Part shown: positions 12,616 to 62,496 of the stretch, piece after piece
Numbering within the stretch: the stretch's first letter is position 1
Layout: each line of letters starts with the position of its first letter
IMG/VR virus record: IMGVR_UViG_3300046616_000314
Coordinates: 62,001-126,000 of that record
Strand: one strand, 5' to 3'
Length of the DNA: 64,000 nt
The notes under the pieces: generated by a model
Database searches by the model: none
Told to the model about the DNA's origin: nothing
The model's input: the letters and a program-made list of their open reading frames with translations, nothing else
Translations under genes and position numbers: made by a program

Positions 12616-13313
12616 TCTACCATCTTGAACCCATCGGTGATTGGTCTACGGTAGCTGATGAAGATCGCTTTAGCGGTTTTCTAGACGGCGACCGCCGAGC
12701 ACTACATAATCCAAAGTGGCGCGGAAACGTGCGCGATGCTTTCCGTAATACATCGCACCAATACAATTTCTTTTTCCTTCAAGACGTAAAAGATCGTCGT
12801 TCAACGTACACGGCTAAATCTCTATTTGAAGTGAGTGATTACCTTCTTGACTATACATTCGATATGTCAGTACCAGACTCAATCAACGTGGTGTTCACGA
12901 ACAATTTCGGTACTGATCGCGTCGCAATGACACCCTGGATCATTGCTCATAGAACGTCGCACACAATCCACGAACACTTGGATGATGGCAAGGGTGTAGA
13001 ATACGTTCAAATATTACACGATATGTGTATTCATATCAAAAATATCAATAATTGCCATCATCGATTGAATAAAGACTTGCGCCAAGTCTTGAAATTCCGC
13101 AGCGCAAAGAAACAGCTTACGCGATATGGCGAATTGTTTCATGAAATATTCGCTCAATACTTGATACAAGGAAGCGTGACATTCATCAAACTCCCAAACA
13201 CCGTTCCTGATGCGGATGTAATCAATTCGATTACTAGAAAATATGCACCGAAGATCAATGCCTCTATCAAGAGACTATTAGATCAATCTGTTGGTAACAT
13301 TTATATTCTTTAG
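12612..13313 (+). CDS. Hypothetical protein with atypical zincin-like motif
   Basis: MTPWIIAHRTSH and ELFHEIFAQYL. Confidence 0.6.
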   Translation: MIYHLEPIGDWSTVADEDRFSGFLDGDRRALHNPKWRGNVRDAFRNTSHQYNFFFLQDVKDRRSTYTAKSLFEVSDYLLDYTFDMSVPDSINVVFTNNFGTDRVAMTPWIIAHRTSHTIHEHLDDGKGVEYVQILHDMCIHIKNINNCHHRLNKDLRQVLKFRSAKKQLTRYGELFHEIFAQYLIQGSVTFIKLPNTVPDADVINSITRKYAPKINASIKRLLDQSVGNIYIL

Positions 13314-14203: not shown

Positions 14204-14497
14204 TTATTTATTATGGGCGTGGAAGCATCCGTTTGCGATGTTGAACATGACACATCCACCGATGAAACATAGGACACTGATGCCGATGAAAGAATCAACT
14301 CCCGTTGCATCATACAGAGTGAAACCAGCGACCAGAAGGAACGGTGACGTGATGAAAAGAATGGCGCCTGCGATCAGGGCGACGTAACCCGTGATGGCTT
14401 CGGATCGTGCGCGCTCGCGGATCATGATCAAGGATCGGTTAGCCAATCCATGCAACATTTTATTGAGAACATTGATGTTGTGGGAAACCATTTTCAT
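14204..14497 (-). CDS. Small membrane protein
   Basis: Two hydrophobic segments; coupled operon. Confidence 0.65.
   Translation of the reverse strand: MKMVSHNINVLNKMLHGLANRSLIMIRERARSEAITGYVALIAGAILFITSPFLLVAGFTLYDATGVDSFIGISVLCFIGGCVMFNIANGCFHAHNK
14205..14210 (-). promoter_or_regulatory. T4-late-like promoter element TAAATA
   Basis: TAAATA-ATGG-ATG (gene start 14200). Confidence 0.7.
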
Positions 14498-44633: not shown

Positions 44634-44639
44634 TAAATA
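44634..44639 (+). promoter_or_regulatory. T4-late-like promoter element TAAATA
   Basis: TAAATA-ATCG-ATG (gene start 44644). Confidence 0.7.
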
Positions 44640-44643
44640 ATCG

Positions 44644-46230
44644 ATGCGCTATCGTGACCTTCTCAAAGAATCTCCCCAGACTGGTTTTAAGCCCGGCTTT
44701 GAGCAATGGTTCGCGGGTTCTAAAGTCGTAGACAAATCCGGTCAGCCTTTGGTTTGCTATCACGGTACGTTCAGAGATTTTGCGGAATTCCAATATAACG
44801 ACAACGGTTGGGCGGGCTCTGGCTTCAATCGTCTAGGGTTCTGGTTCGATACCGATCCCAAGACCCCAGGCTGGCTTGCGGGCGACGAAGAGGGCTATGG
44901 CATCGGAGACGGTGGAAACATCAAGCCTTGCTATCTGTCGATCAAAAAACCTCTCGTCATGTCGGGTGACATGATCTGGAACGAGGACTTGGACGAGCTT
45001 CGTCAGCTTCGTAAAAATGTTTCAGCAACGTATGCGGCGCGGCGCGCAGCCAAGAACGGTGATTGGAACTTCGGACAATTAGACCTAACCTATCGCGATG
45101 CGTCGAGAGCATTTGACGCGGCTATGGAAAAGATGATGCAGAATGACGGTTGGACCCGGATCATGCGTCTTCTTCCGAACGGCATTAAGTCAACTACTGA
45201 GGAAGTCGCTGCGTTCCAGGCTGAATGCATCGCCGAAGGTTACGACGGTATTCATTTCGTGGATACGATGGCTGACTCAGGAACCCGTGACTATGCGCCT
45301 ACTGATTGGTGGTTGGCATTCCATCCAAATCAAATCAAGTCAGTCTTCGCTTCACAATTCAATCCACAGTCCACCAACATGAGCGAAGCTCAAGAGTTGG
45401 ATGAAATCATGGAAATCCCTGATTTTGACGATGACATCAACAATCAACGTCGTTCGCTGAATTGGGGAGAAAAAATTAAAGATTCCAAGAAAGTTGGAAA
45501 GATCGGACCCTATAATTTGGTCGTTCATCGCAGTGCTTGGGGTGATGAATATCTTTTGCTAGATAATCAGAAACACCCAATGGGCAAGGCGACTGTCTCA
45601 AAATATTCAGGTGGCTTCTATCGCGTCGGACACATTTGGTTTGATCCGACCGTCCGAGGCAAGGGCTACGGCTATTTGTTCTATCGTTTTCTGATCGACA
45701 AAGGCATGAAAGTCATCACTGACACCGATCAAACACGGTTCAGCCGAGGCGTGTGGTCTAAGCTGGCGCGCGAAGGTTTCGTGTATGAATATTTTGAAGA
45801 TGATACGCTAGGGTCCAAGGTTACGGACACCCAGGATTTCTACGGCAATCGTCTATCTAGATTGGCGGCTGTTAAGCCCGGCACGGTCAAAGAGAGTGCG
45901 CTTGTTGAGAAGACGATCTTCATTCCAGACTCATCGGGTATGAATTTCGTGGTAATGAAAAATCCGTCGAAGGCACAATATTTTAAATTGCTGCATCCCG
46001 ACTCAGACCTGAAGGGTTTGATTTCGGGCAAGGATTTCTATGTGTGGGCAGCATATCACGCTCACCATGGGCAGATTGCGCACGGGTTGGGTCTAGGCGA
46101 GGATGCGTATCGTATCTTTGTTCGATACAACGCGATCCTCGCTCATCCATCGTTGTTCCCGGCTATTCGAGATAATCCGCAGATGAAATATCTATATGGT
46201 CCGTCTGGACCGAATCTAGAAAGCGAGTAA
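44644..46230 (+). CDS. Polyvalent protein: ART-PolyVal-like ADP-ribosyltransferase + GNAT acetyltransferase + unknown domain
   Basis: WFAGSKVVDKSGQPLVCYHGT..GFWF..CYLSIKKP..GYDGI..AFHPNQIKS; GHIWFDPTVRGKGYG..TDTDQT..GVWSKL. Confidence 0.75.
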   Translation: MRYRDLLKESPQTGFKPGFEQWFAGSKVVDKSGQPLVCYHGTFRDFAEFQYNDNGWAGSGFNRLGFWFDTDPKTPGWLAGDEEGYGIGDGGNIKPCYLSIKKPLVMSGDMIWNEDLDELRQLRKNVSATYAARRAAKNGDWNFGQLDLTYRDASRAFDAAMEKMMQNDGWTRIMRLLPNGIKSTTEEVAAFQAECIAEGYDGIHFVDTMADSGTRDYAPTDWWLAFHPNQIKSVFASQFNPQSTNMSEAQELDEIMEIPDFDDDINNQRRSLNWGEKIKDSKKVGKIGPYNLVVHRSAWGDEYLLLDNQKHPMGKATVSKYSGGFYRVGHIWFDPTVRGKGYGYLFYRFLIDKGMKVITDTDQTRFSRGVWSKLAREGFVYEYFEDDTLGSKVTDTQDFYGNRLSRLAAVKPGTVKESALVEKTIFIPDSSGMNFVVMKNPSKAQYFKLLHPDSDLKGLISGKDFYVWAAYHAHHGQIAHGLGLGEDAYRIFVRYNAILAHPSLFPAIRDNPQMKYLYGPSGPNLESE

Positions 46231-47831: not shown

Positions 47832-48518
47832 TTAAGTCCCCTCATGAATCATTTTGAGGAAAACGTCAGCGGTGTATCGCGAATCGTTTCCCGCACAATG
47901 GAAATGGGTTGCGCCCACGTGATAGTAATGCGCCAAATCAACAAGCTTCAGCTTACGCCCAAAGCGAGCCTTACACAACTGCGCGGTGTCATAATAATAT
48001 GGGCGCGGCAAATCGTAGCCCGAGTCTCGTAAGGCATCCAAGTCAAAGTGGACGCTATGACCAACGAGGAAATCGGCGGTGTTGAAATGCGACAGCACCA
48101 GACGCTTCATTTGTGCTTCGGTGGCAACCACAATAGTCTCACCAAATTCAAAGGGGATGGTGCGCTTCTTGGTTTCGAGAGCGTAGTTGTACGTCTCAAT
48201 CGAATTGCCACGGAAGACAGTCACGCCGATTTCTTCGATCACGCCTTCAAGGGTGCGTTCCAGATCGAGTGACAGGAACCTCTTACCTTTGCGGAACTTG
48301 TCGAGCGCGATCCGGGTTGACCGCTCCCAAAATTCATCCTGGCGAGCGAAATACCTGCGATCCGAAATCTTTTTGATCTTGTCCTTGATGCGAGCGATCT
48401 TGGGCATTTCGCGATCATACCGAACGCTGGCTCGCATGTAGCCATACGGACCCTCGCGCAAAGCAATCAGCTTGCGCTCATGATCTTCAATGCGTTCGCG
48501 TAAAAGATTCAGGTCCAT
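47832..48518 (-). CDS. DEDDh 3'-5' exonuclease
   Basis: LSLDLE, LVGHSVHFD, YDTAQL, HCAGNDSRYT. Confidence 0.85.
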   Translation of the reverse strand: MDLNLLRERIEDHERKLIALREGPYGYMRASVRYDREMPKIARIKDKIKKISDRRYFARQDEFWERSTRIALDKFRKGKRFLSLDLERTLEGVIEEIGVTVFRGNSIETYNYALETKKRTIPFEFGETIVVATEAQMKRLVLSHFNTADFLVGHSVHFDLDALRDSGYDLPRPYYYDTAQLCKARFGRKLKLVDLAHYYHVGATHFHCAGNDSRYTADVFLKMIHEGT

Positions 48519-49105
48519 TATTCAGCAATACCACGAAGACGTAGTTTGTCAAGAGAAACAGTATGAGTAATCTTGTTGCCCGACAATAGAGCTATGGCGA
48601 TTTCATCGTGTGTCTTGAAGAACAACCACTGACCAAAATTGTGAGCATCGGGGAATTTGGCGAAGAATTTTTTATCATCCGTGCTTCGCAGCATGTACTT
48701 GAATTCGGCATGGTCATCGCGGCTCTGCGTCAAATTGACATACGCAATACCCGCGAGCGCACCATAATTCATGGTGATTTTTTTATAGCGCGGAAGATTT
48801 TTTGTGCGACAGCCGGGGTGCGGATAGTAATGATAGAAGTCCCACTCAGAATTCTTTGCGTTCTGTTTGCTATCGCGCGCCAGGAGCATAGAGAACGCTG
48901 CATCGCGTGAATGGAAATTCGAAATGGGCTGATAGCCATTAGGCAAAATCACGCGCCATTTTTCATAATCAGGAAAGGTGTTATCGGCAAATACGATGCC
49001 GATGTATTCACCAGACCGGCGATACGTCAGATAGCGTGACCCGCCCAAATTTCTGAAACGAGGGTGATCTTTTTCGAATTTATATGGAGGAAATTCGATC
49101 CCCAT
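48518..49105 (-). CDS. Hypothetical protein, divergent FKLK-like C-terminus
   Basis: LFFKTHDEIAIALLSG; start moved to the TAATG overlap. Confidence 0.6.
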   Translation of the reverse strand: MGIEFPPYKFEKDHPRFRNLGGSRYLTYRRSGEYIGIVFADNTFPDYEKWRVILPNGYQPISNFHSRDAAFSMLLARDSKQNAKNSEWDFYHYYPHPGCRTKNLPRYKKITMNYGALAGIAYVNLTQSRDDHAEFKYMLRSTDDKKFFAKFPDAHNFGQWLFFKTHDEIAIALLSGNKITHTVSLDKLRLRGIAE

Positions 49106-49530
49106 TAGTATCGGATCACCGTGCCGAAGGGAGGAACCACGTCCGCAGGCACGTCCATCAGAACAAACGTCGTCGGGCAATAATGCGGATCGGCGCCTTT
49201 GAAATCATAGGTATCGGTGAAGAACGTCAGTTGGTCGGGTTTGACTTCCACGTTCTTCAGGAAAGCCCACAGGCGACCTAGGCTCGTCCCGCCGCCACCG
49301 TGGCTCAAATCGTAAGACGTGATGCCTTCCACCGCCTGATGATGATCAAAGGTCTGGTAGTTGTGAACCACAGTGTCGAGCGAAAAAACGTGCAGCATGA
49401 ACGGCTCGCCTTGGGCGGTATATCGTTGGGCGACGCCCGTGGCGTGAGCCCTGAAAGCTTCCATGGTGTAAGGACCGACGCTACCCGAAGCGTCAAAGAC
49501 GATGGCGTAATGCTTCATGACAAATCCCAC
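49105..49530 (-). CDS. VWA-like domain protein (DUF2201 C-terminal type)
   Basis: IVFDASGSV (MIDAS), GGGGT, FFTD. Confidence 0.75.
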   Translation of the reverse strand: MGFVMKHYAIVFDASGSVGPYTMEAFRAHATGVAQRYTAQGEPFMLHVFSLDTVVHNYQTFDHHQAVEGITSYDLSHGGGGTSLGRLWAFLKNVEVKPDQLTFFTDTYDFKGADPHYCPTTFVLMDVPADVVPPFGTVIRY

Positions 49531-50816: not shown

Positions 50817-50844
50817 AATGTACCACGGTCTTAGGCGTTGTCAA
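50817..50844 (-). promoter_or_regulatory. sigma70-like promoter
   Basis: TTGACA-N16-TACATT with TGG before the -10 box. Confidence 0.7.
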
Positions 50845-52529
50845 TAGTCCAAGAAATCATCAAGCGTCTTCGTATATACGGTTGGACCAAATGCACTAAC
50901 CTTGTCGAGTATTGGAACAAGACCCGCAAAGTCGGCTCTCTTATAATTGCCAGCTTCCAAGCATGATCTGATCAACAAATCAAATTTGTCTCTTGAGAAA
51001 CCTTGCTTAGCACCCTCAATAATCAATGCATAAAGGAATTGCAACGATCTATCGCCAAAGAATCGACGCGCATGACTATGTGCTTGTGACCAAAAGCCAA
51101 TTAACTCTTTGGGATCGGTACAAGCCGTCATGACGGTAGATTGGTGATTATATAGCAGATACTTGAAATATTCGGGATTTTCGCGCACATACTTCACAGG
51201 ATCGATTGTTCTATTCCACCAAATACTTAACAGGTGTGCTCGTTGACCGGGCTCAAGGAAATCGGCAGCCAATATCTTAGCCATCAATTCTTGAGTCATA
51301 TGGAAATCTCGTTTACCGAGTTGGTACACGGTGTCATCGGCATTGTCCTTCAACTGTTGAAGATATTCTTCATCAGTGAACGGAATCAAATTGTACGGAT
51401 AAGCCCAGGCGAAATATTTTTCCTTGATTTCGTCCTGAATAGATACGGGAAGAATACCCCAACCGAGTGTTGTAAAAATGCTCACGTGAGAGCCTTCTAG
51501 AACATCGCGGACCAACTTAAGTTCTTCTGGTGTAAATTTACCGCCTTGTTGATATCGCTTGGTAAGAAATTTCTTTAGGGCAAGCGGATTGTCAATATAC
51601 ATATCAACAGGTGTCGGAGTACGATCAACAAGGCGCCGATTACGGATGACATCTACCTCGCGCAAGCCTTTCTTAGAGAAAAACAGTGCTTGAACAGGTT
51701 CATTGGTGTGGATGATACCTTCACCCTCGACATCAACGCAACCATCGTAGCCTAACTGCATGAACAGTTTCGACCAACGAGTTGTCAGCTTGATACCATA
51801 TTCGCGGCGTTGAGCACGAATCGCATCAACAACATTTTCTTTACCGAAACTCAGCAATTCTTTCCAGATCGGTGAGTCCATTGTAGTTTTGTGGACCGCG
51901 TTGTAAGTTGCAATTTTATCGTCAAGGTCTTCTAGACTCTTGACTTGATTGAAATTCAACGGATACCAATATTTGTTAACATACATTTGAATTGGCGTAG
52001 CGTGTGCCATTTGAAAATCATCCGTGTCACTTGCTAGTTCACGTGTGATATTCCAAATCATACCACCAGCCGATTTATTAGTCGCTGAATTTTTCGCTTT
52101 TTCTACGATATGCTTGAATCGAAATTCATAATTTTCATTCTTGACGATAATATCGTGTAGCTTACGAACGTCTTCGTCCATTTGTCTCTCTGTATAAAGA
52201 GAGAAATCAATCATGTTCCCGGTTGCCTGAACAACGTACATATAGGCACGATCTTTGGCGAACGGAACATTGCCTTGTGCCATAAGAACGTAATCAACGG
52301 GATAGACATAGATACCCAGAGGCGTACCGTAGCTATAAGTCGGATTGATACCGATCTTTGTGCCTTTTGTATGGGGAGATTTGTTTCTCACCATCCCTTG
52401 ATCCATGCTGTCAACGAACGAGACAAACATAGTCGGATCATTCGCATATTGCTTCAGTTCTTCAAGGCTATCGATTTTTTTGTTGATATGGGCGTTACGA
52501 CGCTTTTCAAACAATTCAAAAGCGCGCAT
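50841..52529 (-). CDS. RRNP-family protein 1 (putative packaged ART-fold effector)
   Basis: MRAFELFE; FVSF, KIGINP..TPLGIYVYP, LGYDG.VD..GIIH.NEP.QA.FF. Confidence 0.7.
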   Translation of the reverse strand: MRAFELFEKRRNAHINKKIDSLEELKQYANDPTMFVSFVDSMDQGMVRNKSPHTKGTKIGINPTYSYGTPLGIYVYPVDYVLMAQGNVPFAKDRAYMYVVQATGNMIDFSLYTERQMDEDVRKLHDIIVKNENYEFRFKHIVEKAKNSATNKSAGGMIWNITRELASDTDDFQMAHATPIQMYVNKYWYPLNFNQVKSLEDLDDKIATYNAVHKTTMDSPIWKELLSFGKENVVDAIRAQRREYGIKLTTRWSKLFMQLGYDGCVDVEGEGIIHTNEPVQALFFSKKGLREVDVIRNRRLVDRTPTPVDMYIDNPLALKKFLTKRYQQGGKFTPEELKLVRDVLEGSHVSIFTTLGWGILPVSIQDEIKEKYFAWAYPYNLIPFTDEEYLQQLKDNADDTVYQLGKRDFHMTQELMAKILAADFLEPGQRAHLLSIWWNRTIDPVKYVRENPEYFKYLLYNHQSTVMTACTDPKELIGFWSQAHSHARRFFGDRSLQFLYALIIEGAKQGFSRDKFDLLIRSCLEAGNYKRADFAGLVPILDKVSAFGPTVYTKTLDDFLDY

Positions 52530-54418
52530 TAGAATACTCCCTCATCATCGTCGGCTTCAGCCCGATCAGTTTCAAACTTGAGCATTTCCATCACGTTGTT
52601 GAGACCAAGCTTTTCAGCACGATCATAGACGGTTGCCCAATACTTGTTCAGACCTTCCATGCGGTCGGACTGACGAATTTCAGGATGAGTGCGAGCCATT
52701 TCTTCATTGATCAAATGAATCAAGTTTGAAATCTGACCCTGTTGGCAATCATTTGCGTATAACAACAGAGAACCCATCCAAGCGGGAGTACGATCAGCCA
52801 AGCTAACAATGTCGTATACATTGCGTTTGACGAATTGGTAATACTTCATGAAGTCTTGAGGCGTGCGGCGTTGACGCAGGAATGCCATAAGAATCGGTTG
52901 GCTAATCTTATAAATGTTGCCATTGAACAGCCCCGGTTTGCTTCCAATGAAATCAAAGATCATCTTCTGGTGATTGACGATGCCCTGATTGACAATCCCG
53001 GCGATAAGATCAGCCGAGGCGCGGGCATCGTTCACGACTGCCTCAAAGACATGCGGGCGACGTAGAATAGCTCTATAAAAACCCTTGGCGTGTCCACTGA
53101 AGTAATGTGGATCGAAGTTTTGCTGATAGTTCAAAACCTGATTGACCATTTGTTTATCTGTGAAGTCAATCGCATCCAACGGGAAACCAATTCGTTCCCA
53201 GTGTTCGCGAACATAGGACTTCACTTCAGCAGGGAACATCGGATAGATGTCGGCAAATACTTCATTGTCATGATTATAGCCGATGACTTCGGTCATCATC
53301 TTGATTTCGTCGGGAGTATACTCGCCCTTGTGCTTATGAATCCATGCCTTGAACAGCTTAGGCTTTTCAATGAAAATCGTAGTCTGACCTTTTGGCTTCT
53401 CGTGCTGGACGTTGTTGAGGACTTCCAATTCTTGGATACCAGCCTTGGAGAAGAACACGGCTTGAGTGGGTTCATTCTCGTGAATAATTCCCTTACCTTG
53501 TAGGTCAGATGCTCCCGAATAGCCAAGGTCACGGAATAGTTTAGACCAATTGGCGATGCCCTTGGTGGATTGGATGCGCCGGAATTCTTCGACCGCAGCC
53601 AATACTTGTTCCGGTGTAGCCTTATTCAGAGCGTCTACAGCACCTTTGAAGTTTACTTCAAGCAACTCACGAATGGTCATCGGCGTTTTTTCAGTCGCCA
53701 CGGATGATTGTCGGTTGAATGCTGCTTTATATTTTTCAACGTCTTCGGCTGTCTTGAGCGTAGAAGAATGAGGAATTAGCTTACGATCATTCGGCGGAAT
53801 ACCGGTTTCAAAATCAGCACTCTTCCATGTCGCCGAAATCAGCATATTCATAGGCGAACGCTGATTGTACATGCCATGGCGCCGCCCTGACAACAGGCGA
53901 GTCAAATTCCAAATCTTCCCACCAGGGGTTCTAGATGTTGAAGTAGAATCAGCAAGTAATTGCATTTCTTGAAATTGCGTATCGCTCATGAGGTTCATGG
54001 CTCGCAACTTTGCGGCATCCTTGTCGTAGTCTTCTTGCGAATACGTGTGTAAGTCCAACACATTACCGCGCGCCTTGACGACATACAGGTATGGGCGTTT
54101 CGCAGCGAAAGGAACGTCGTTGACAAATTTCTTCAAAACGTAATCGACCGGATAGCAGTAGATACCCACCGGGGTATTGTAATTGGTCTTCGGGTTGATG
54201 CCGATCTTAGAGCCGCGTTGGTTCGCCAGTGTTCCCTTGGAACGAATACCGCCAAACGTTTCGTCACCGATGCTGCGAAGAGAGTGCGCGCCGACATCAT
54301 GCGTGAACGAAACGTACACGTCGGGATGACCTTCATATTTTCGCAAGGCATCGATAGCGGAAACCTTGGGATTCAGGTCTGGATTTCGACGTTTCTCGAA
54401 TAGTTCAAATGCGCGCAT
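52529..54418 (-). CDS. RRNP-family protein 2 (putative packaged ART-fold effector)
   Basis: MRAFELFEKRRNP; same conserved motifs. Confidence 0.7.
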   Translation of the reverse strand: MRAFELFEKRRNPDLNPKVSAIDALRKYEGHPDVYVSFTHDVGAHSLRSIGDETFGGIRSKGTLANQRGSKIGINPKTNYNTPVGIYCYPVDYVLKKFVNDVPFAAKRPYLYVVKARGNVLDLHTYSQEDYDKDAAKLRAMNLMSDTQFQEMQLLADSTSTSRTPGGKIWNLTRLLSGRRHGMYNQRSPMNMLISATWKSADFETGIPPNDRKLIPHSSTLKTAEDVEKYKAAFNRQSSVATEKTPMTIRELLEVNFKGAVDALNKATPEQVLAAVEEFRRIQSTKGIANWSKLFRDLGYSGASDLQGKGIIHENEPTQAVFFSKAGIQELEVLNNVQHEKPKGQTTIFIEKPKLFKAWIHKHKGEYTPDEIKMMTEVIGYNHDNEVFADIYPMFPAEVKSYVREHWERIGFPLDAIDFTDKQMVNQVLNYQQNFDPHYFSGHAKGFYRAILRRPHVFEAVVNDARASADLIAGIVNQGIVNHQKMIFDFIGSKPGLFNGNIYKISQPILMAFLRQRRTPQDFMKYYQFVKRNVYDIVSLADRTPAWMGSLLLYANDCQQGQISNLIHLINEEMARTHPEIRQSDRMEGLNKYWATVYDRAEKLGLNNVMEMLKFETDRAEADDDEGVF

Positions 54419-54422
54419 GACT

Positions 54423-54428
54423 TATTTA
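54423..54428 (-). promoter_or_regulatory. T4-late-like promoter element TAAATA
   Basis: TAAATA-AGTC-ATG (gene start 54418). Confidence 0.7.
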
Positions 54429-56219
54429 TTAGTCCATTTTATGCGCGTCACCGTAAACTTGCGTCACCGGATTTGCTTGATGAATTGCTCGCTTGATCTC
54501 ATCTACATACTTGGGAGCATGAGCCGTAGTCCATGCAAGCAAATTGTTCCACCATGCGCCTTCGTCAGTCGGATGATATGAGAATGCGGGTTCCGAACTG
54601 CGAAGCATATTGGTAACGAGTTGGTCATAGCCTTTGCTCATAGCATATTGAAGACAGCCCATAAGGAAAGTTGGTCCCTTGGCAGATATACCGCTGGAAA
54701 CTAGGGCTCGTTCGACCATTTTACCGATTTCGACAAAGGTTTCCGGGTCTTCAATTCGGCGCATTCCCACTGTTTGAGCAAATGGTGACATTTTGGAGAA
54801 TTCTTCTTTATTATTCTTTATGAACTGATTGACGGCTTCGGTATTTTTAACAATTGACGCCAGTTCGTAGAATACTAAGCTCTTATTACCAGCCGACATA
54901 TAATTTTTGTTCTTTGATTGCATCAAATACAAGAACGTTTCAGGCGTAATGACAAACTTGTCAATTTTGTTGAGAAGGCTTGGGTTACGCATGACCTGAT
55001 AAGCAATCTCGTGTTGCGTCAAGCCAGGAACACATTTGGGATCGAACACACCCTCATACCAGCGAACACGAATATCCTTGCGAATTGATTCGGGAAGCAG
55101 GTTCCAATTGATTACGCGAATAGCTTCTGGGTTCTCCCAAATGAAACTATTAATCAGGTTAACTTCTTCTTCGTTGAATGGCTTGCGGCTATGCTTCTCT
55201 AGATATTTGGCGAACTTCAAATAATCGTAGTACCATTCGGTATCAACGCGATACGGCTTGTGCGAATAGGTGATGTTGTGGATAGTCTCGACTTCACTGA
55301 AGCTTTTCTTATTGAAGAACAACGCTTGTGTGGGTTCGTTCTGGTGAATGATACCATCACCATTATCGATCAGACCATCATAGCCTAGACCTTGGAAAAC
55401 TTTGGACCATCGGGTTGTTGGTTTAGAACCCGAAATGGCACGGAACTTATTCGCGATCTCCGCAAACTCTTCTGGTGACGTGTTTTCGAATTGATCGTAC
55501 ATGCCATTTTGACGAAGGCTGTCACGGAAATTTGTGAGCAACGCTTTCTTCAACGCAACGCCAGTACGATCAGCGATTACTTCCTTATAAGACCACGGTG
55601 AATTCAAATAAATCTTGGCGATGAATTCGTGTAGGCCATCGGTGTATCGCAAATGTTGTGCTTCGAAGGTAGGAAACTCGCGGCAGATGTTGAAGAAATA
55701 TCCGCCAGGAGATTGCACTTTGGCTTCGTAACTGGCTCGATTTACAAACTCTTTCCAGTCATCGTCATCAACGTCTGGAACGTCGGCTTGCAATGCGGCG
55801 CAATCGTTCTCTAAATCATCTTGAGAATACTTTTGTAGATCAAGCATGTTGCCCGTAGAGCGAATGACCTGAATGTATGGACGGTCGGCAGCATAGGGAA
55901 CATCCGGTTCACCGCTGCTTCGATCAAGTACGTAAGAAATTGGGTAGGCGTAGATACCTAGAGGCGTGCCGTGGTCATATTTCGGATTGATGCCGATCTT
56001 GGAGCCGCGCGAGTTATGGCTTTTGCCTTTGGCGTTGATGCCCGTTCCGGTGTTGTACGGTTCAGCGGCAACGTCAGGATTGGATTTCGTACCAACATCA
56101 TCGGTGAAACTGACGTAAACGTCATCGCGACCCTTGTACTTCTTTAAGGAGTCCAGGGCAGAAACCTTGGGGTTCTGTTCGGGATTACGTCGGGCTTCAA
56201 GGATTTCGTATGCGCGCAT
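54429..56219 (-). CDS. RRNP-family protein 3 (putative packaged ART-fold effector)
   Basis: MRAYEILEARRNP; same conserved motifs. Confidence 0.7.
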   Translation of the reverse strand: MRAYEILEARRNPEQNPKVSALDSLKKYKGRDDVYVSFTDDVGTKSNPDVAAEPYNTGTGINAKGKSHNSRGSKIGINPKYDHGTPLGIYAYPISYVLDRSSGEPDVPYAADRPYIQVIRSTGNMLDLQKYSQDDLENDCAALQADVPDVDDDDWKEFVNRASYEAKVQSPGGYFFNICREFPTFEAQHLRYTDGLHEFIAKIYLNSPWSYKEVIADRTGVALKKALLTNFRDSLRQNGMYDQFENTSPEEFAEIANKFRAISGSKPTTRWSKVFQGLGYDGLIDNGDGIIHQNEPTQALFFNKKSFSEVETIHNITYSHKPYRVDTEWYYDYLKFAKYLEKHSRKPFNEEEVNLINSFIWENPEAIRVINWNLLPESIRKDIRVRWYEGVFDPKCVPGLTQHEIAYQVMRNPSLLNKIDKFVITPETFLYLMQSKNKNYMSAGNKSLVFYELASIVKNTEAVNQFIKNNKEEFSKMSPFAQTVGMRRIEDPETFVEIGKMVERALVSSGISAKGPTFLMGCLQYAMSKGYDQLVTNMLRSSEPAFSYHPTDEGAWWNNLLAWTTAHAPKYVDEIKRAIHQANPVTQVYGDAHKMD

Positions 56220-56223
56220 CCTT

Positions 56224-56229
56224 TATTTA
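56224..56229 (-). promoter_or_regulatory. T4-late-like promoter element TAAATA
   Basis: TAAATA-AAGG-ATG (gene start 56219). Confidence 0.7.
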
Positions 56230-56238
56230 TTTGAGGAT

Positions 56239-56451
56239 TTATCTGAACTTCAACTTGAATAGCAATGCATCTTCTTCTGTACGAAACCATATTGTTTTCC
56301 GTACACACTCGTCATCAATCAAGTCGGTTTGTTCCTTATATTCCATTGTGGGATTCTTCTTAAAATATGCGCGAAGTCTCTGGCGCAACACTACGGATGC
56401 AGCCAGCGAATAATCTACTTCAATGGTTACGGAATGTTGATAGTCCTTCAT
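56239..56451 (-). CDS. FKLK-motif family protein
   Basis: WFRTEEDALLFKLKFR*. Confidence 0.8.
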   Translation of the reverse strand: MKDYQHSVTIEVDYSLAASVVLRQRLRAYFKKNPTMEYKEQTDLIDDECVRKTIWFRTEEDALLFKLKFR

Positions 56452-56714
56452 CCGAACTTCAGCTTGAAAATCATGGCGATCTCTTCGTCATCGAAATAGA
56501 ACGCTTGGGTTCGAATTCCGGTTGTATACATATTATTGTCGCGATGGTCGTATTCCCACATAACGTCTTCGGACAACGCACGGAACCATTCGGTGATAGG
56601 GTCATAGTCGTCGGGGTGATTGAGCGTGACCACGACTTTGCAAAGCCATGGATCATTTTTCTGGATCGCACTGAAACTACGGTCGGCTACGCCGTCTATG
56701 ACCAATTCTTTCAT
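56448..56714 (-). CDS. FKLK-motif family protein
   Basis: ITEWF; FYFDDEEIAMIFKLKFG*; start moved to the ATGA overlap. Confidence 0.8.
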   Translation of the reverse strand: MKELVIDGVADRSFSAIQKNDPWLCKVVVTLNHPDDYDPITEWFRALSEDVMWEYDHRDNNMYTTGIRTQAFYFDDEEIAMIFKLKFG

Positions 56715-57055
56715 TGGAATTTCAACTTGAACATCAGAAAGTCGTCTTCGCTTTCGAACACGAATTTCTTTTTGCAGCATTTTTCCAGTTTGCGGAGTGC
56801 GTAACCAACAGTTGTCGGCATAGCAGACCAATTGCCTACCGTTCCTGCCAGATGGTCGGTGAGACGCTGATAGAAGGCGCGGGTTTCCTCATCACATTGC
56901 GAATAGTTGTCGCTATGGTTGTTGAGTCCGAGTTTGTGGAACGGAAGATCGATTTCGATGATGTTGGGGTTTCCGCGCATACGAAGATGCAATCCGTTCA
57001 CCTTGCCACAGGCAACGGGATAGACCACACCAGCAGTACGCGGAACAAATGTCAT
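56711..57055 (-). CDS. FKLK-motif family protein
   Basis: GNW; FVFESEDDFLMFKLKFQ*. Confidence 0.8.
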   Translation of the reverse strand: MTFVPRTAGVVYPVACGKVNGLHLRMRGNPNIIEIDLPFHKLGLNNHSDNYSQCDEETRAFYQRLTDHLAGTVGNWSAMPTTVGYALRKLEKCCKKKFVFESEDDFLMFKLKFQ

Positions 57056-57369
57056 TTGCGATACTCGAATTTAATTTTGAACAACGCGCATTCATCAACA
57101 TTCTCAAACGCAAACGTCTTGAGAATGATATCATTTCGCCCCGGTCCCCGTCGTGCGCGTAGAGCCGAAACTTCTGTGCCATGATTGCGATAGGCGATCC
57201 AGGCGCCCTTCACGTGCTCCATATGAGCGGACAGCTTGCCGTAAATCTCTTCATCGGGTACGCCCCACGGAATCAAGACATCGACGGTGAGCGCATTCAC
57301 AAAGACGTACTCAGCCGCACGCTCGCATGACATGATCCAGCCACCGTGGATCAGCATGGGGCAGACCAT
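57052..57369 (-). CDS. FKLK-motif family protein
   Basis: KGAW; FAFENVDECALFKIKFE. Confidence 0.8.
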   Translation of the reverse strand: MVCPMLIHGGWIMSCERAAEYVFVNALTVDVLIPWGVPDEEIYGKLSAHMEHVKGAWIAYRNHGTEVSALRARRGPGRNDIILKTFAFENVDECALFKIKFEYRK

Positions 57370-57758
57370 TTCATACGGAAAAGCATACGATCCTCTTCGC
57401 TGAAGAAAATCAGACTATACACGGAATAGCGATTAAAACGCTCGCAAAGTTCTCTTCCATCCCGAAAATGGTCAAGATAAGTTTCGCTGAAGACCGGAGT
57501 ATAGCCAAGGGTTGTTTCACACCATTCCCTGATGTTGTCGTGCAGATTCGTGCGCTGTTCACCCGTTGGTTTGCCATCGGCGGCGAGCACGACCTTGGGA
57601 CCGAACATCGAGCGATTCACCGCATGATCGCGATTATGGTATTCCCAACGAATCAAGTACAATTGAGCTTGGAAGTGGGCTGTCCAGCCTGAACGAATGG
57701 AGCCTGTCTGCACGTTTCCCGTGCGTCCATCGACAAAATGTAAAGGCAGCATGGACAT
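57351..57758 (-). CDS. FKLK-motif family protein
   Basis: IREWCETTLG; FFSEEDRMLFRMKWS. Confidence 0.8.
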   Translation of the reverse strand: MSMLPLHFVDGRTGNVQTGSIRSGWTAHFQAQLYLIRWEYHNRDHAVNRSMFGPKVVLAADGKPTGEQRTNLHDNIREWCETTLGYTPVFSETYLDHFRDGRELCERFNRYSVYSLIFFSEEDRMLFRMKWSAPC

Positions 57759-57781
57759 AAAAATTTGGTCTCCAAATATAA

Positions 57782-57811
57782 ATTATGGGGATGGTCGCCC
57801 ACCCCCATAAT
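57782..57811 (-). terminator. Intrinsic terminator-like hairpin closing the intergenic transcript
   Basis: ATTATGGGG..CCCCATAAT stem followed by a T-rich tract on the minus strand. Confidence 0.65.
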
Positions 57812-57990
57812 CTCCTGTCGTAGTCCGCACTTTACTTCAAGACACTTCTATATGTCGCAGCGTACCGCAACATCAACCAACACTTCTATATGCCAGTCTA
57901 TCATAGCTTCTTAGCTTGCGCTCCACTAAGACCACCCCACGGGCTTCAATTACATCGGGATCGGGGCGTCGGGTCTGTTCCCCACCGAGA
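57782..57990 (-). ncRNA. Candidate ~200-nt non-coding RNA
   Basis: No substantial ORF; own promoter and terminator; AGC-GCAA-GCT tetraloop hairpin; 13-nt direct repeat at 38-nt spacing. Confidence 0.4.
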
Positions 57991-57995
57991 ATTAC

Positions 57996-58023
57996 ACTCT
58001 ACTATACTCTAAAATTCTGTCAA
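57996..58023 (-). promoter_or_regulatory. sigma70-like promoter
   Basis: TTGACA-N16-TAGAGT. Confidence 0.6.
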
Positions 58024-58027
58024 GCAC

Positions 58028-58270
58028 TTATTTGTACCAACCTGATCGCACCGCGTTTTCGATACGAAAGGTTTCGAAATTCCGTATCATAACCAATCGG
58101 ATAGCAGCCATGTATGCCAGCCAATTCAAAACTGGGACAAGGGCGACTAAGATCATGACCACCATAAGCTCATCGTCATGGTATGCCTTGTGATTATCCA
58201 AAACATAGACTGTTGAGCACGCGGCGGCGCCTGTGATGTATATGACGAAGAATATAAGTGCGCTAATCAT
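58028..58270 (-). CDS. Small membrane protein
   Basis: Two hydrophobic helices, VPVLN motif. Confidence 0.6.
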   Translation of the reverse strand: MISALIFFVIYITGAAACSTVYVLDNHKAYHDDELMVVMILVALVPVLNWLAYMAAIRLVMIRNFETFRIENAVRSGWYK

Positions 58271-58514
58271 AGGCGGCAACCGACTGCACACGACGGTCAG
58301 GGATCGACCGCCAGAACAGGTAAGCTTTGTACAATGACGCCACAGCCAGATTCACAAACGGAATGACGGACGCGATAAGAAGGACTACCCCAAACAGGGC
58401 AGAATCGCGGAAAGCCTCGCCTTCAACGTTATCATCTTCGATCCACAGGAACGCACACCACAGACCACCTATGGCATATTGCAAAATAAGGAAGCTTTGT
58501 ACGAACGAGGGCAT
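58263..58514 (-). CDS. Small membrane protein (probable paralog of its neighbour)
   Basis: Two hydrophobic helices, IPFVN motif. Confidence 0.6.
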   Translation of the reverse strand: MPSFVQSFLILQYAIGGLWCAFLWIEDDNVEGEAFRDSALFGVVLLIASVIPFVNLAVASLYKAYLFWRSIPDRRVQSVAAYD

Positions 58515-58545
58515 CCCAAACGCATACTAAAATGCGCGGAAGGTG

Positions 58546-59925
58546 TCAATATTTTCGTTTTTGGAGCAACGCCGAATAATTGACCGGATGGCGCACTAGT
58601 TCTTTTTCCAATTCGCTAACGAATTTTTTGATCGCCAGCTTCCAACGCTTCGGGGCATTGTCTTTCAGCGCACTAAAGAAACTACTAGTGAAACCAACGT
58701 GACCCTTCTCGGCTTCCGTCAATCCAACGAACACATTGATAGCATCCCGCAAGGTCGGAGGGGCAGGAAGATAAACGCTGTATTTTTTAATCATTTCCAA
58801 CAGATCATAGAAGTCAGCGATTGCCGAAATAATTTGCGGATCGAATTCAACCGGAGAGGTCAAATAAGGTTCCGCAACACTTCCGTCCGTAGGATGTTTC
58901 TTCTTTTGATCGGGATGGCGCAACACGTTGTATTGGATCATGTGTTGCATTTCATGATGCAAGGTTTTCTTGATACGATCCAATGCAATTTCCAACTCAC
59001 CTAACTTCGCTCCGTTAGGATAATTCTTTAGCGCACCGTTGGTTGGCTGAATGACAATAGAATTCATATCAGGATAATATGCAGCCATGGTCGTTTCGTT
59101 TTCGGGTTTCCACTGCATACCGATGAAGAAATAGCCTTTCCGCACTGGGGCTAGTTTCTGATAGCTTAGAGGTAAGTCTGTAATATCAAATGTGAATGTT
59201 TTGAGATCAAATTTCTCTGGATAATCTTCTTTCGGAATTCTGACGCCATGTTTCTTACATACGTCTTGGAATTCCTGCCACAGAGCCGCATTCTCTTTGG
59301 TCTGGAACATCGGTGTCAGGTCGCGCCATTGATCCCGAGCGTGCCACAAAATCTGTGTGACGACCCAATGATAAGCGAGGACCATAGCAAGAGGCGGGAC
59401 AGCGATCACGCCTTCCATTAGCACGTTGGTATGGGCTTCCAAAGCTTCGGTGAACGTCGCAGCATTTTTAAATTTTTCAAAATGGGGATCGTAGGTAACG
59501 GTTGCCTCGATTTCGTGGCGCCCTGCCAGGATTTGAAGACAGATGCGGTGATGCCCTTCCATGACCCAGTACATACCGTTGGGTAGGGCGACCAATTCAG
59601 GAAGCGGAGCGGTATCCCAATGACTTAGAACTTTTTGGAGATTTTTCAGCCCAACACCGTTTTGATCTTGCGTAACGAGCTTTTCAACCGGAATGAGTTG
59701 GGTCTTGTGGGTTTGGGTTACGATTTCCTCATAGGGAGCCTTACCCATGAGCACCTTCAAATACTCTGGGTTCATGTCTTTCTCGTCGTGGTTCAAACCG
59801 AATGAAGAGAAAGGAATGTCAATATCTTCCCAATTTTTGGTTTCGCGATTGGAATGTGTTTGTGCAAAGAAACGCAGTAACTTAAGCAGGTTCTTTTGTT
59901 CGTCTGAAGTGAAAGGCTTAAGCAT
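58546..59925 (-). CDS. Two-domain protein: ParB/Srx-like domain + zincin (HExxH) domain
   Basis: IPVEKL..WVMEGHHRI..EIEATV; TLHHEMQHMIQ..YLTSPVEFD. Confidence 0.7.
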   Translation of the reverse strand: MLKPFTSDEQKNLLKLLRFFAQTHSNRETKNWEDIDIPFSSFGLNHDEKDMNPEYLKVLMGKAPYEEIVTQTHKTQLIPVEKLVTQDQNGVGLKNLQKVLSHWDTAPLPELVALPNGMYWVMEGHHRICLQILAGRHEIEATVTYDPHFEKFKNAATFTEALEAHTNVLMEGVIAVPPLAMVLAYHWVVTQILWHARDQWRDLTPMFQTKENAALWQEFQDVCKKHGVRIPKEDYPEKFDLKTFTFDITDLPLSYQKLAPVRKGYFFIGMQWKPENETTMAAYYPDMNSIVIQPTNGALKNYPNGAKLGELEIALDRIKKTLHHEMQHMIQYNVLRHPDQKKKHPTDGSVAEPYLTSPVEFDPQIISAIADFYDLLEMIKKYSVYLPAPPTLRDAINVFVGLTEAEKGHVGFTSSFFSALKDNAPKRWKLAIKKFVSELEKELVRHPVNYSALLQKRKY

Positions 59926-61510
59926 CTTCGGTACCTGTCAATCCATAACGAGAAAGTTGTAATATCTGTTCGGCACGTTCGTCTTTGCCATAGGTGAGAC
60001 GGAGGACACCTAAAACTTTAGAGCGAATTTGCGCACTACGAGAACTAATATGAGCGTATTCAGTGAGAATATCATTGAAATACGCCAGAGTAATGTAATC
60101 ATGCTTATCGATGATCACTGAAGCAACTGACCGGAGCCAACTATACTCATCGTCTCGCAATAGTAATTCGCGAGCAAATAGTTCTGGAATAGTATTGCTA
60201 TGAATAAAACTATGAAGCATTTGCGCATACTCGCGCGGATTCGTGATATTCGAGATAGCACGGGTTTTGACAACATTCGGGAAGAATCGAATGAATGTCG
60301 AATGATCCTTCAGAAATTTTAACGAATCAAATTCGAAATCGGCTCCACATTCAACCGCGAGTGTTTTAAATCTGCCCGTCTTCTGACTATTGTCCAGCAC
60401 TTCTTTTGCAAATGTATCGAGTAATTGCACGTATTGTTGGCGTGTAATAAGCGGTTTCATGAAACGGGTCATGATCCAAGGTTCTTCAGCCACGGCGGCG
60501 AAGATTTCTTCTGGTGATACGTTAGGTAGGTAATACGGATAGATGACGTTGACTGCCCACGAATCTTTCAACCACTGTTGAATAATGGTCGGCACGTTTT
60601 TCCAATTGAATTGGAGGTTGTCTAGGAATGTATCATCGGAACGGAAATCACCAATGTAATCCATGATCTGAGTGTTCTCAGTCTCATTGGTATTACCTTT
60701 ACGATTATTAAGAAACTTGAAGAATGAATTTTGGTTCTTCAACCAGATGTCATATAGCGATGGGGTTCTTTTGGGAGCGGGTGTGTTGTGAATGACTTCG
60801 ACAACCCGGAAGGATTTTTTACTAAAGAACAACGCTTGGTTGGGCTCGTTTTTGTGAATGATCCCATAGCCAGGATCAACCAGACCGGCGTATCCAAGTT
60901 GACTGAAGATACGTGACCACCGAGTTGTCATCTTGGCTTGTACGGCAGATTTTTCCGCTGTTTTCTTATCGAGTGCAAACATGCGAGTGATGTTGAACAT
61001 CTTACCCGCCCACGTGTCTGTAGAAGCGTTATATTCGCCATCATCGATAATGTGTTCATCGTCATAACCGAGAGCCTTCAGCTTCTCGATATCTTCGTTC
61101 ATGTCGCGTTCTGTATACAGTTCAAAATCCAGCATCTTGCCGGTTGGTTCCAGAACGTAAATGTATGGACGCTCGCCAGCGAAAGGAACTTTCACTTCTA
61201 CAGCAGAAGAATTTTTCAAGACATAATTGACGGGGTAGGCGTAGATACCCAAAGGCGTACCATAACCGTATGTAGGGTTGATCCCAATCTTAGGTCCGCG
61301 AGCATTGTGGACATGACCTTTGGCTCTTACGCCATCTTCGGTCTTTTTAACTTTTTGATTGCCTGCATTGTTGGCAGATAGAACGCCGACATCGGCAGTG
61401 AACGATAGAAACACGTCTTTGTCTGTGTACTTGCGCAGTTGTTTCATAACCGGAGCCTTCTGATTTTGTTCAGGATTCCGGCGGGCTTCGATCAGTTCAT
61501 GAAAACGCAT
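59918..61510 (-). CDS. RRNP-family protein 4 (putative packaged ART-fold effector)
   Basis: MRFHELIEARRNP; start moved to the TAATG overlap at 61510. Confidence 0.7.
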   Translation of the reverse strand: MRFHELIEARRNPEQNQKAPVMKQLRKYTDKDVFLSFTADVGVLSANNAGNQKVKKTEDGVRAKGHVHNARGPKIGINPTYGYGTPLGIYAYPVNYVLKNSSAVEVKVPFAGERPYIYVLEPTGKMLDFELYTERDMNEDIEKLKALGYDDEHIIDDGEYNASTDTWAGKMFNITRMFALDKKTAEKSAVQAKMTTRWSRIFSQLGYAGLVDPGYGIIHKNEPNQALFFSKKSFRVVEVIHNTPAPKRTPSLYDIWLKNQNSFFKFLNNRKGNTNETENTQIMDYIGDFRSDDTFLDNLQFNWKNVPTIIQQWLKDSWAVNVIYPYYLPNVSPEEIFAAVAEEPWIMTRFMKPLITRQQYVQLLDTFAKEVLDNSQKTGRFKTLAVECGADFEFDSLKFLKDHSTFIRFFPNVVKTRAISNITNPREYAQMLHSFIHSNTIPELFARELLLRDDEYSWLRSVASVIIDKHDYITLAYFNDILTEYAHISSRSAQIRSKVLGVLRLTYGKDERAEQILQLSRYGLTGTEDA

Positions 61511-62247
61511 TAAATTTTCTCCGCAACGGAGAAGAAATTGCTTCCATCTTTTTTGAGTAATTTCAGATCGGTCTTGAGCATACGCCAGCATTCGGAAGGA
61601 TGGATCGTCCCCGCATGGGCGACGTGCATACCACGGTTGATCGCTTCGATCTTCAAATGATCGGGCATCTTCTTCAGCACACGTTTGCCGCCTTGAGCGA
61701 AGTAAGCGTACTCGCCATCAAGAACACGTTTGCGTTGATTTTCGGTCATGCTCCAACCGATGTAATCGTACAGTTGTCTACCGGCATAATCTGATTGCGG
61801 CAGAGAACATTTATAACCAACGGTGACGGGATGCCCATAGCGACCCATTTGTGTGATGGGCTCAGAATTGTGGCTATAAAATTCACCGATGGAATCTTCG
61901 TCAGGCTGCACGTCTACGAGATCGGCGCCTTTGATAACGAACACATATCCATAAGGATCGGTTCGCATATCGTCTTTGAAATCGCCAGCGGCTTCTTGCA
62001 TGGCATGAGTAAAATTGCCACCAAGGGCATACATGATGGCGTATGCGATATCGGATGTAATATAGACGCGCCCGGCAACAGGAGCAAGCATACCCTTGCC
62101 TTGGGTCTCGCGACCTTTCAGACCTTCGGTAGCAACGACATTGGCTGCACGAGTCGATGACGTGCCGTGATAGTACGTTTTTGCACGAACGTTATCGTCC
62201 GGTGCAGCCTCGTCAATTTCGGTACCAAATAATTCGTGAAAACGCAT
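61510..62247 (-). CDS. H-Y-type ADP-ribosyltransferase-fold protein with capsid-targeting-like N-terminus
   Basis: MRFHELF..IDE; YYHGTS..EGL..VYITSDIAYAIMYA..YVFVI..PDED. Confidence 0.65.
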   Translation of the reverse strand: MRFHELFGTEIDEAAPDDNVRAKTYYHGTSSTRAANVVATEGLKGRETQGKGMLAPVAGRVYITSDIAYAIMYALGGNFTHAMQEAAGDFKDDMRTDPYGYVFVIKGADLVDVQPDEDSIGEFYSHNSEPITQMGRYGHPVTVGYKCSLPQSDYAGRQLYDYIGWSMTENQRKRVLDGEYAYFAQGGKRVLKKMPDHLKIEAINRGMHVAHAGTIHPSECWRMLKTDLKLLKKDGSNFFSVAEKI

Positions 62248-62250
62248 CCA

Positions 62251-62496
62251 TTATTTATAGTGGAGTGCGAACGCCTCGTTAGCTAATCGTTTGGCTTCGA
62301 CCATAGCATCTTCTTTGAGCAAGAACGTTTCGCCTACTGCATGTCTAGTCTCAGGCGAATGGATAACGTACGTGCGATTGCTCAGTTCAAGGACATCGAA
62401 ACGAATACGAACATCGTCGTATTGTTCATCATTCTCGCGGTCGATTTCATCGGGGAAGACGTGCCAGTGATCGGCAATGGTATTGGGCGGAATCAT
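62251..62496 (-). CDS. Hypothetical protein
   Basis: SD GGAG; stop codon overlaps the late promoter. Confidence 0.55.
   Translation of the reverse strand: MIPPNTIADHWHVFPDEIDRENDEQYDDVRIRFDVLELSNRTYVIHSPETRHAVGETFLLKEDAMVEAKRLANEAFALHYK
62252..62259 (-). promoter_or_regulatory. T4-late-like promoter TATAAATA
   Basis: TATAAATA-ATGG-ATG (gene start 62247). Confidence 0.75.

Follow-up and report, generated by a model that had tools for sequence, protein, structure and literature searches.

The window analysed in this work, a stretch of 64,000 nucleotides, comprises bases 62001–126000 of the 561,116-bp IMG/VR record IMGVR_UViG_3300046616_000314, estimated to be 97% complete and probably derived from a rhizosphere metagenome, and carries four large paralogous genes whose products share an N-terminal domain resembling ADP-ribosyltransferases (ARTs). 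The genome is that of a 561-kb T4-like phage encoding a T4-type portal, a gp23-type capsid protein and a gp21-type (S77) prohead protease. A first-pass annotation had described the genes as large paralogs with common motifs, and this was confirmed; all four open reading frames (ORFs) lie on the minus strand:

50841–52529, minus strand: paralogue 1 (P0001, 562 amino acids); ART-like domain in residues 1–325 (51555–52529), helical C-terminal half at 50841–51554.
52529–54418, minus strand: paralogue 2 (P0002, 629 amino acids); ART-like domain in residues 1–371 (53306–54418), C-terminal half at 52529–53305.
54429–56219, minus strand: paralogue 3 (P0003, 596 amino acids); ART-like domain in residues 1–351 (55167–56219).
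54429–55166, minus strand: HEAT/DUF4116-like helical solenoid, the C-terminal half of paralogue 3.
59918–61510, minus strand: paralogue 4 (P0004 residues 28–557, 530 amino acids); ART-like domain at 60668–61510, helical C-terminal half at 59918–60667.

The motifs by which the proteins had been grouped, RRNP, (Y/F)(V/L)SF(T/V), KIGINP..TP.GIY.YP, VP(F/Y)A, G...N..R and W...F..LGY.G..D...GIIH.NEP.QA.FF, are all present in the alignment of the four. Overall protein identity is 28–34%, and the similarity is far above chance, with in-genome tblastn E-values of 1e-43 to 3e-55. At the DNA level the conserved blocks share just 60–72% identity; the duplications must therefore be old, and recent gene conversion among the paralogues is ruled out by the same figure. 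Paralogues 1–3 abut or overlap, forming an operon-like block in which paralogues 1 and 2 are probably co-transcribed, because the start of the former overlaps the stop of the latter; the ART-like domain of paralogue 2 contains a long helical insert. Paralogue 4 is set apart from the other three by a gene for a 459-residue protein (P0005) and five small genes. Its ART-like domain is the most compact of the four, and this copy was used for modelling. The paralogue 4 ORF is open up to 61591; since the methionine at 61510 shares one base with the stop of the preceding gene and yields the N-terminus typical of the family, the start assigned in the first-pass annotation is right.

The set is larger than the four members originally counted. 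The four are indeed in the window, and an iterative search of all ORFs raised the genome total to nine paralogues; of the other five, one lies immediately outside the window on its upstream side and four are at more distant places. The phage also encodes two canonical ART-PolyVal proteins and a third, weak one; one ART-PolyVal gene is located in the window (44644–46230) and another lies 4 kb from a second pair of paralogues.

Pfam, PHROGs and NCBIfam contained nothing that matched the four window proteins. A word-indexed search revealed 83 relatives of the ART-like domain, and a profile search of 1.84 billion cluster representatives (clusters at 50% identity) returned 3,871 at E ≤ 0.001, of which 1,913 had E ≤ 1e-30. 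IMG/VR contains no fewer than 218 copies; the contigs that bear them reach 578 kb in length, and several have more than one. Megablast and tblastn of the window genes against 50,697 phage records gave no match, and a more typical member of the family matched two of these records only, both belonging to one uncultured 735-kb phage. The family is concentrated in large T4-like phages. Term look-ups, which do not amount to a complete literature search, found no description of it in the polyvalent-protein paper (PMC5512222), a jumbo-phage survey (PMC9503650) and a survey of viral NAD+ (nicotinamide adenine dinucleotide). In homologues the domain is joined to DUF4116 repeats, to an NMNAT-like nucleotidyltransferase (a match below the family thresholds), to a canonical ART-PolyVal domain, or to PBECR5, SLT and NUDIX domains. 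The last combination is that of P0209 (2,058 amino acids), a typical polyvalent protein.

The shared domain spans 280–370 residues. An AlphaFold2 model of P0004 residues 28–310, built from an 84-sequence alignment, had a predicted local distance difference test score (pLDDT) of 83.8 and a predicted template modelling score (pTM) of 0.78. In a Foldseek search of the PDB the first match was a chain of the cyanophage A4 pre-ejectosome (9k3a_B, E 2.7e-4), followed by AcrIF11 (6KYF, E 0.24) and, more weakly, by PARPs, MbcT and a diphtheria-toxin homologue. Exhaustive comparison of the model with 48,161 PDB chains again placed 9k3a_B on top (Z 7.0, 161 residues). It was followed by a nearly continuous run of ART folds (Z 3.3–4.9) covering model residues ~29–246: MbcT, AcrIF11, NatT, diphtheria-toxin homologues, ParT, RES toxins, PARP1, 2, 4, 10 and 13, exotoxin A and cholix toxin. 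When predicted viral structures were searched, Foldseek matched the domain to ART-PolyVal-like proteins with E-values of 7e-5 to 1e-3 and probability 1.0, and the matches in AlphaFold Database clusters included DUF3990, ART-PolyVal-like, RES and PARP families. Features and shapes from the ESM Atlas agreed with an ART fold, AcrIF11 being among the feature matches. Each score is modest; we accept the fold because they agree across hits, and the models make it very probable that the shared domain has an ART fold. This structural comparison, proposed as a check in the first-pass annotation, thus recovered the expected fold, with ART-PolyVal as the closest named family; by structure, the nearest named relatives are ART-PolyVal, AcrIF11 and the domain of the A4 ejection protein.

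AcrIF11 (PF26151; PDB 6KYF, 8DWQ), an anti-CRISPR ART, is likewise a small phage diphtheria-toxin-like ART whose key residues are non-canonical (H-F-H-D; PMC12421852), and it matches the paralog domain in structure (Foldseek E as above, Z 4.4). It differs in showing no sequence similarity, in keeping the histidine, in consisting of a single domain of 130–160 residues and in having a known target, Csy1.

The top match calls for separate consideration. It corresponds to residues ~1419–1608 of A4 gp27 (9k3a chain B), a protein that sits inside the capsid and is then ejected (PMC12002296). The paralogs might accordingly be structural internal-head or ejection proteins, serving head-core assembly, DNA organisation or channel formation without modifying the host; their several copies per genome and the late-promoter-like boxes described below would suit such a role. 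We regard this explanation as very unlikely. The canonical ART-PolyVal model (P0007 residues 30–245, pLDDT 89.4) matches the same A4 domain equally well in the same set of structures (9k3a_B, Z 7.6; tankyrases, 7.3; PARP2 and MbcT, 6.8), so the gp27 domain is itself probably an ART cargo of a polyvalent-type ejection protein. In addition, it is established that myoviruses do not need a podovirus-type ejectosome (restated in PMC12002296), and residue conservation in the paralogs is patterned like a pocket, not like an interface. A4 gp27 is, moreover, a podovirus ejection protein of 1,700 residues with 11–12% identity to the paralog domain, and its authors did not call the matching gp27 region an ART.

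ART-PolyVal is defined by a histidine in strand 1, a tyrosine in strand 2 and an aspartate in strand 5 (Iyer et al., 2017; PMC5512222). The first-pass annotation had mapped the paralogs onto this pattern strand by strand, and the mapping holds when the AlphaFold2 secondary-structure maps are compared, though not by sequence statistics. The canonical model runs strand, helix, strand, helix, two strands, a block of four helices and three strands, and the paralog model has the same order with a block of five helices. The corresponding segments (P0007:30–245 first, P0004:28–310 second) are:

Strand 1: C-Y-H-G-T (15–19); F-L-S-F-T (34–38).
Strand 2: G-F-W-F (42–46); G-I-Y-A-Y (88–92).
Before the next strand: G-Y-D-G, ahead of strand 174–180; L-G-Y-A-G, at the start of strand 207–213.
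Following strand: T-D-W-W-I-A (192–197); N-Q-A-L-F (224–228).

The two families thus have in common: (i) the fold and the order of its elements (strand 1, strand 2, two strands, an insert of four or five helices, three strands); (ii) an aromatic residue in strand 2 and G-Y-x-G ahead of the next strand; (iii) occurrence in phages and polyvalent proteins; and (iv) A4 gp27 as the best match among solved structures. They are also fused in tandem in P0007 and encoded beside one another in the window. The studied domain differs by an additional N-terminal RRNPxxNPK segment and a K-x-G-I-N-P loop, by the new invariant residues D212, H219, E222 and Q225, and by the helical repeats that always follow it. 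The Pfam ART-PolyVal match of P0007 was considered as evidence that the studied domain belongs to that family and rejected: the match occupies residues 36–241 and the studied domain residues 244–520, and because these are separate units the protein is a tandem fusion.

Several results count against assigning the domain to the ARTs. The Z scores to classical ARTs are just 4–5, within the range of common arrangements, and a search of PDB sequences with the domain profile returned noise only (likewise with the ART-PolyVal profile). None of the four proteins matched Pfam ART-PolyVal (PF18760, threshold 31.2 bits) even at E ≤ 1, while the positive controls P0145 and P0007 scored 69–71 bits; the 84 family members gave scattered weak matches in Pfam at E ≤ 10, with no ART family among them. 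In hhalign the comparison with ART-PolyVal had a probability of 3.5–3.7% (E 0.012), and just the LGYxG...QALFF block was aligned, with GYDG...DWWIAF; at 3.7% probability, homology cannot be proved by sequence. The canonical H and D are lost or variable, and in PARPs loss of the histidine usually accompanies loss of NAD+ binding. Because it lacks a Pfam match to ART-PolyVal as well as the invariant His and Asp, we file the domain as a new ART-fold family allied to ART-PolyVal and not as a member of it. The structural models support viewing it as a distinct, very large and unannotated family within the ART fold, with ART-PolyVal as its nearest neighbour.

Residue conservation was next compared across the family. 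Replacement of the strand-1 histidine by serine, already noticed in the first-pass annotation, is a family-wide feature: serine occupies this position in 210 of 222 copies and histidine in two, against 30 histidines out of 30 in the canonical ART-PolyVal alignment. The strand-2 aromatic position is tyrosine in 228/230 copies. The aspartate of GYDG, which had been included in the mapping, was not borne out: it is present in 168 of 229 copies (73%), compared with 31/31 in canonical ART-PolyVal, and the window genes at 50841, 52529, 54429 and 59918 have D, S, D and A, respectively. Other positions are nearly fixed. P79, G88, E222 and Q225 are found in all 230 copies, D212 in 229/230, K74 in 228/229, H219 in 226/230, N78 in 224/229 and R10 in 215/215, and N12, N16, K18, W172, W198 and R203 are each conserved in at least 91%; all the window paralogues retain this near-invariant set. 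Of these residues, E222 and Q225 lie close to the strand-5 position.

Serine for histidine, a variable catalytic aspartate and the presence of inactive PARP-like domains (RCD1, PARP13 and TASOR) among the PDB matches would be expected of a pseudo-enzyme, in which the ART fold is just a binding scaffold and the C-terminal repeats add avidity. Such a protein could be a non-catalytic decoy, a sponge for a nucleotide immune signal (NAD+-derived or other), or an inhibitor acting on a host ART, sirtuin or TIR target, and the canonical ART-PolyVal genes of the phage already supply catalytic ARTs. Taken together, these variants seem to us unlikely, for it is rare that a scaffold keeps ~20 near-invariant positions throughout 230 copies; many of these positions are charged or polar and situated in loops, and E222 and Q225 are absolutely conserved. 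The signal sponges known to us are, moreover, small and oligomeric, unlike two-domain proteins of 530–630 residues. The suggestion in the first-pass annotation that the proteins are catalytically altered decoys therefore finds little favour. Since the residue set is near-fixed across the family, we consider the pocket to be rebuilt and still under selection rather than that of a decaying pseudo-enzyme, and conservation makes it probable that the domain holds a functional pocket.

Whether NAD+ is the ligand of this pocket can be proposed only tentatively, with doubt slightly outweighing belief. The NMNAT-like fusion and two further genes of the phage are weak hints in this direction: a NadV-like gene of the NAPRTase family (genome positions 306983–307711, minus strand) and a Macro-domain gene (312526–312897, plus strand). 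Both are outside the window, ~10 kb or less from the second ART-PolyVal/paralogue cluster (293–302 kb); no NADAR domain was found. Genes of both kinds are common in jumbo phages anyway (PMC9503650).

The C-terminal halves of the four paralogs (234–258 residues) had been described as helical and unrelated. Their helical character stands; their unrelatedness does not. BLAST between them is near noise, but an iterative search from the P0004 half reached 58 family C-termini and linked it with those of P0003 (1e-35) and P0001 (4e-29) over ~130–140 residues. Three of the four halves (those of the genes at 59918, 54429 and 50841) are therefore distantly homologous and highly diverged. No link was obtained by this search for the P0002 half or for the last ~90 residues of the others. 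The P0004 profile matches a unit of ~45 residues that is repeated five times in DUF4116-bearing homologues. The DUF4116 (PF13475) repeat is carried by the homologues P0006 and P0012–P0019, which were reached by the same search, and has no Pfam match in the window proteins. An ESM Atlas model of P0003 residues 345–596 resembles HEAT, ARM and DUF4116 solenoids (template modelling scores of 0.5–0.59). As judged from the profiles, then, the C-terminal halves represent a single repeat module that diverges rapidly, except for P0002 and the final ~90 residues of the others, and this pattern fits a constant head joined to a variable binding tail.

The proteins begin with a conserved leader. The family N-terminus reads M-[RK]-x-x-E-[IL]-x-E-A, followed by R-R-N-P-E-Q-N, and [LIVMFY]-x-E-x precedes RRNP in 172 of 190 copies. 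In the window genes, in gene order, the leader ends with LFE-8, LFE-8, ILE-8 and LIE-8 (a sequence pattern only), and in some members it nearly reads as the T4 capsid-targeting sequence (CTS) MKTYQEFIAE. In T4, propeptides of 10–20 residues direct cargo to the prohead core, and the protease gp21 cuts after glutamate, at ITE-6 and at LTE-619 of Alt; a conforming site, LIE-9, is found near the N-terminus of gp21 itself (PMC9026906; PMC5694885). The gp21-type protease of the present phage (PF03420, 92.8 bits) is encoded at genome position 337919–338380. In fusion proteins the leader motif is located at the domain junction, as expected of a processing site. In total, the leader occurs at the start of 18 proteins of the genome, whereas shuffled N-termini gave 2.0 ± 1.4. 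Among the 18 are the paralogues, each of the three ART-PolyVal-like proteins and a homologue of Acb1 (PF23474, E 1e-37), a phosphodiesterase directed against the cyclic-oligonucleotide-based antiphage signalling system (CBASS).

It should be mentioned that the Acb1 homologue (locus L019; genome 155115–156191, plus strand), which lies outside the window, begins with MRAFELFE, identical to the first eight residues of two paralogues, and has a TAAATA box at -10. Its sequence raises the possibility that this counter-defence enzyme is packaged in the head. A 296-residue protein in the window (13310–14200, minus strand) also has an MR..ELF leader and a -10 TAAATA box.

The TAAATA hexamer was present within 40 nucleotides upstream of 89 of 888 genes, compared with 14 for the reverse-complement control, and the genes preceded by it include those for the portal, baseplate hub, tail lysin and tail fibre. 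Two spacing classes were distinguished: -28 to -40, to which the portal, a baseplate hub and a tail fibre protein belong, and -10/-11, with 37 genes. The box accompanies 17 of the 18 leader proteins, mostly at -10/-11. In the window the boxes are as follows:

56224–56229, minus strand: 10 nucleotides upstream of the start codon of paralogue 3.
54423–54428, minus strand: 10 nucleotides upstream of the paralogue 2 start, within the 10-nucleotide gap after paralogue 3.
62252–62257, minus strand: at -10 of the 245-residue ORF that probably heads the paralogue 4 operon.
14205–14210 and 44634–44639: before the 296-residue ORF and P0145, respectively.

The -10/-11 spacing was also observed before family members in some unrelated IMG/VR phages (about 8 of 31). 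If the -10/-11 boxes are T4-type late promoters, transcription would begin on the start codon or beside it, and the late mRNAs would be leaderless.

These observations bear on the claim that the proteins are injected. It gains indirect support from the CTS-like leader, the prohead protease, the late-promoter-like boxes and the polyvalent-protein context; we slightly favour the view that the paralogs are packaged and injected cargo. The following points weigh against it. In the model, residues 3–11 of the leader are helical and invariant residues follow directly, and the motif is retained where the domain is internal, so that the leader may simply belong to the domain. The direct neighbours are nucleases and other non-structural genes, not head genes. 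The -10 TAAATA could, finally, be an A/T-rich translation signal. All but the last are also what would be seen if the paralogs were unpackaged cytoplasmic late enzymes, acting after injection like ModA and ModB of T4. We consider that explanation distinctly unlikely, given that the leader occurs on unrelated proteins of the genome (the Acb1 homologue, canonical ART-PolyVal and others) far more often than expected and terminates in a gp21-type cleavage motif, that a homologous domain belongs to a polyvalent protein with a lytic transglycosylase, and that the nearest match among solved structures belongs to a virion ejection protein.

Among known systems, Alt and the internal proteins of T4 are the obvious parallel for packaged cargo. 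They have a short N-terminal leader of the MKTYQEFIAE type with an (L/I)xE end; a gp21-type protease and late-promoter-like boxes are likewise present in our genome; diverse cargo has just the leader in common; and Alt is itself an ART. Alt, however, belongs to the R-S-E clade, the signatures of which (strand-1 Arg, strand-2 S-T-S, E-x-E before strand 5) were not seen at the mapped strands of the paralogs, and C3/VIP2-type toxins were absent from the top 50 structural matches. Packaging and cleavage of the T4 proteins are known, whereas those of the paralogs are predicted from sequence, and the paralog leader directly precedes invariant domain residues and is also found internally in fusions.

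Several neighbouring genes of the window are related to the paralogs by position or content:

61510–62247, minus strand: ORF of 245 residues with an MRFHELF... leader and a -10 TAAATA box.
58546–59925, minus strand: P0005 (459 amino acids), overlapping the end of paralogue 4.
44644–46230, plus strand: P0145 (528 amino acids), canonical ART-PolyVal with HGT, GFWF and GYDG, an MRYRDLLKE leader and a TAAATA box at 44634–44639.

The 245-residue ORF probably heads the paralogue 4 operon, because its stop overlaps the paralogue 4 start. P0145 continues for ~280 further residues, which contain an R-G-K-G-Y-G stretch reminiscent of the GNAT acetyl-CoA motif; a GNAT domain was unconfirmed by Pfam. The pairing of ART with GNAT is a described one in polyvalent proteins.

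P0005 has no Pfam match and belongs to PHROG 38692 (unknown function). Its N-terminal part is ParB/sulfiredoxin-like, with a GHHR motif and an ESM Atlas shape close to small ParB-like proteins (template modelling scores of 0.66–0.69), and its C-terminal region contains HHEMQH, an HExxH motif. Domains of these two types are hubs of polyvalent proteins (PMC5512222). Between the effector genes, at 56239–57758 (minus strand), there are five small genes in tandem (70–135 residues) with overlapping stops and starts; all their products end with an acidic stretch followed by F-K-L-K-F or a variant (FKIKF, FRMKW), and they form a second paralogue family. Two adjacent ORFs at 58028–58291 and 58263–58514 (minus strand; 87 and 83 residues) are strongly hydrophobic, have a short DNA repeat in common and may encode paired membrane proteins. 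Just downstream of the paralogue block are a DEDDh exonuclease-like ORF (47832–48518, minus strand) and a VWA-like DUF2201 ORF (49105–49530, minus strand), the latter with a PHROG match annotated as HNH endonuclease. Because these two ORFs adjoin the block, the neighbourhood is not a head-gene module.

Thus, it can be hypothesized that the paralogs are two-part effectors, packaged in the head and injected, with a rebuilt ART-fold head and a helical tail; for this explanation as a whole, belief and doubt are evenly balanced. The genes would probably be transcribed from T4-type late promoters. The leader of 8–12 residues with its (L/I)-x-E end would provide a site for the gp21-type prohead protease, so that the proteins would be packaged into the prohead core, trimmed after Glu8 and ejected with the DNA, like Alt and the internal proteins of T4. 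In the head, an ART fold in which the strand-1 histidine has given way to serine and the strand-5 aspartate would no longer be required, R10, N12, N16, K18, K74, N78, D212, H219, E222 and Q225 may form a new polar constellation, a ligand-binding or catalytic pocket of altered chemistry whose ligand is possibly NAD+. The C-terminal ~250 residues, a DUF4116/HEAT-like solenoid, would most likely pick the target, and once inside the host the paralogues would differ in the host or defence targets that they modify or bind.

A more radical version, which we consider doubtful, is that the domain is not a NAD+-dependent ART at all but a rebuilt ART fold within a larger injected arsenal. A new catalytic set (K74, N78, D212, H219, E222, Q225 and the N-terminal R/N/K segment) would then perform a different reaction on a host nucleotide signal, a nucleic acid or a protein. 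The arsenal would consist of at least 18 CTS-tagged proteins, the Acb1 homologue and the three ART-PolyVal-like proteins among them; made from near-leaderless late transcripts, packed in the head and delivered in finished form, they would provide counter-defence before phage gene expression.

If the two-part effector hypothesis is true, the domain would be among the largest unannotated branches of the ART fold, with ~3,900 clusters at 50% identity and no Pfam or PHROG model. It would also illustrate how a catalytic fold can be rebuilt, giving up His and Asp while acquiring another set of invariant residues, and can then multiply with exchangeable tails for target recognition. From the shared leader would come a simple sequence rule for predicting the proteins that giant T4-like phages pre-load in the capsid. 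Cargo prediction is otherwise hard for uncultured phages, and the leader would make the question of what megaphages inject directly testable. The same leader on the Acb1 homologue suggests that counter-defence enzymes may arrive in the host ready-made.

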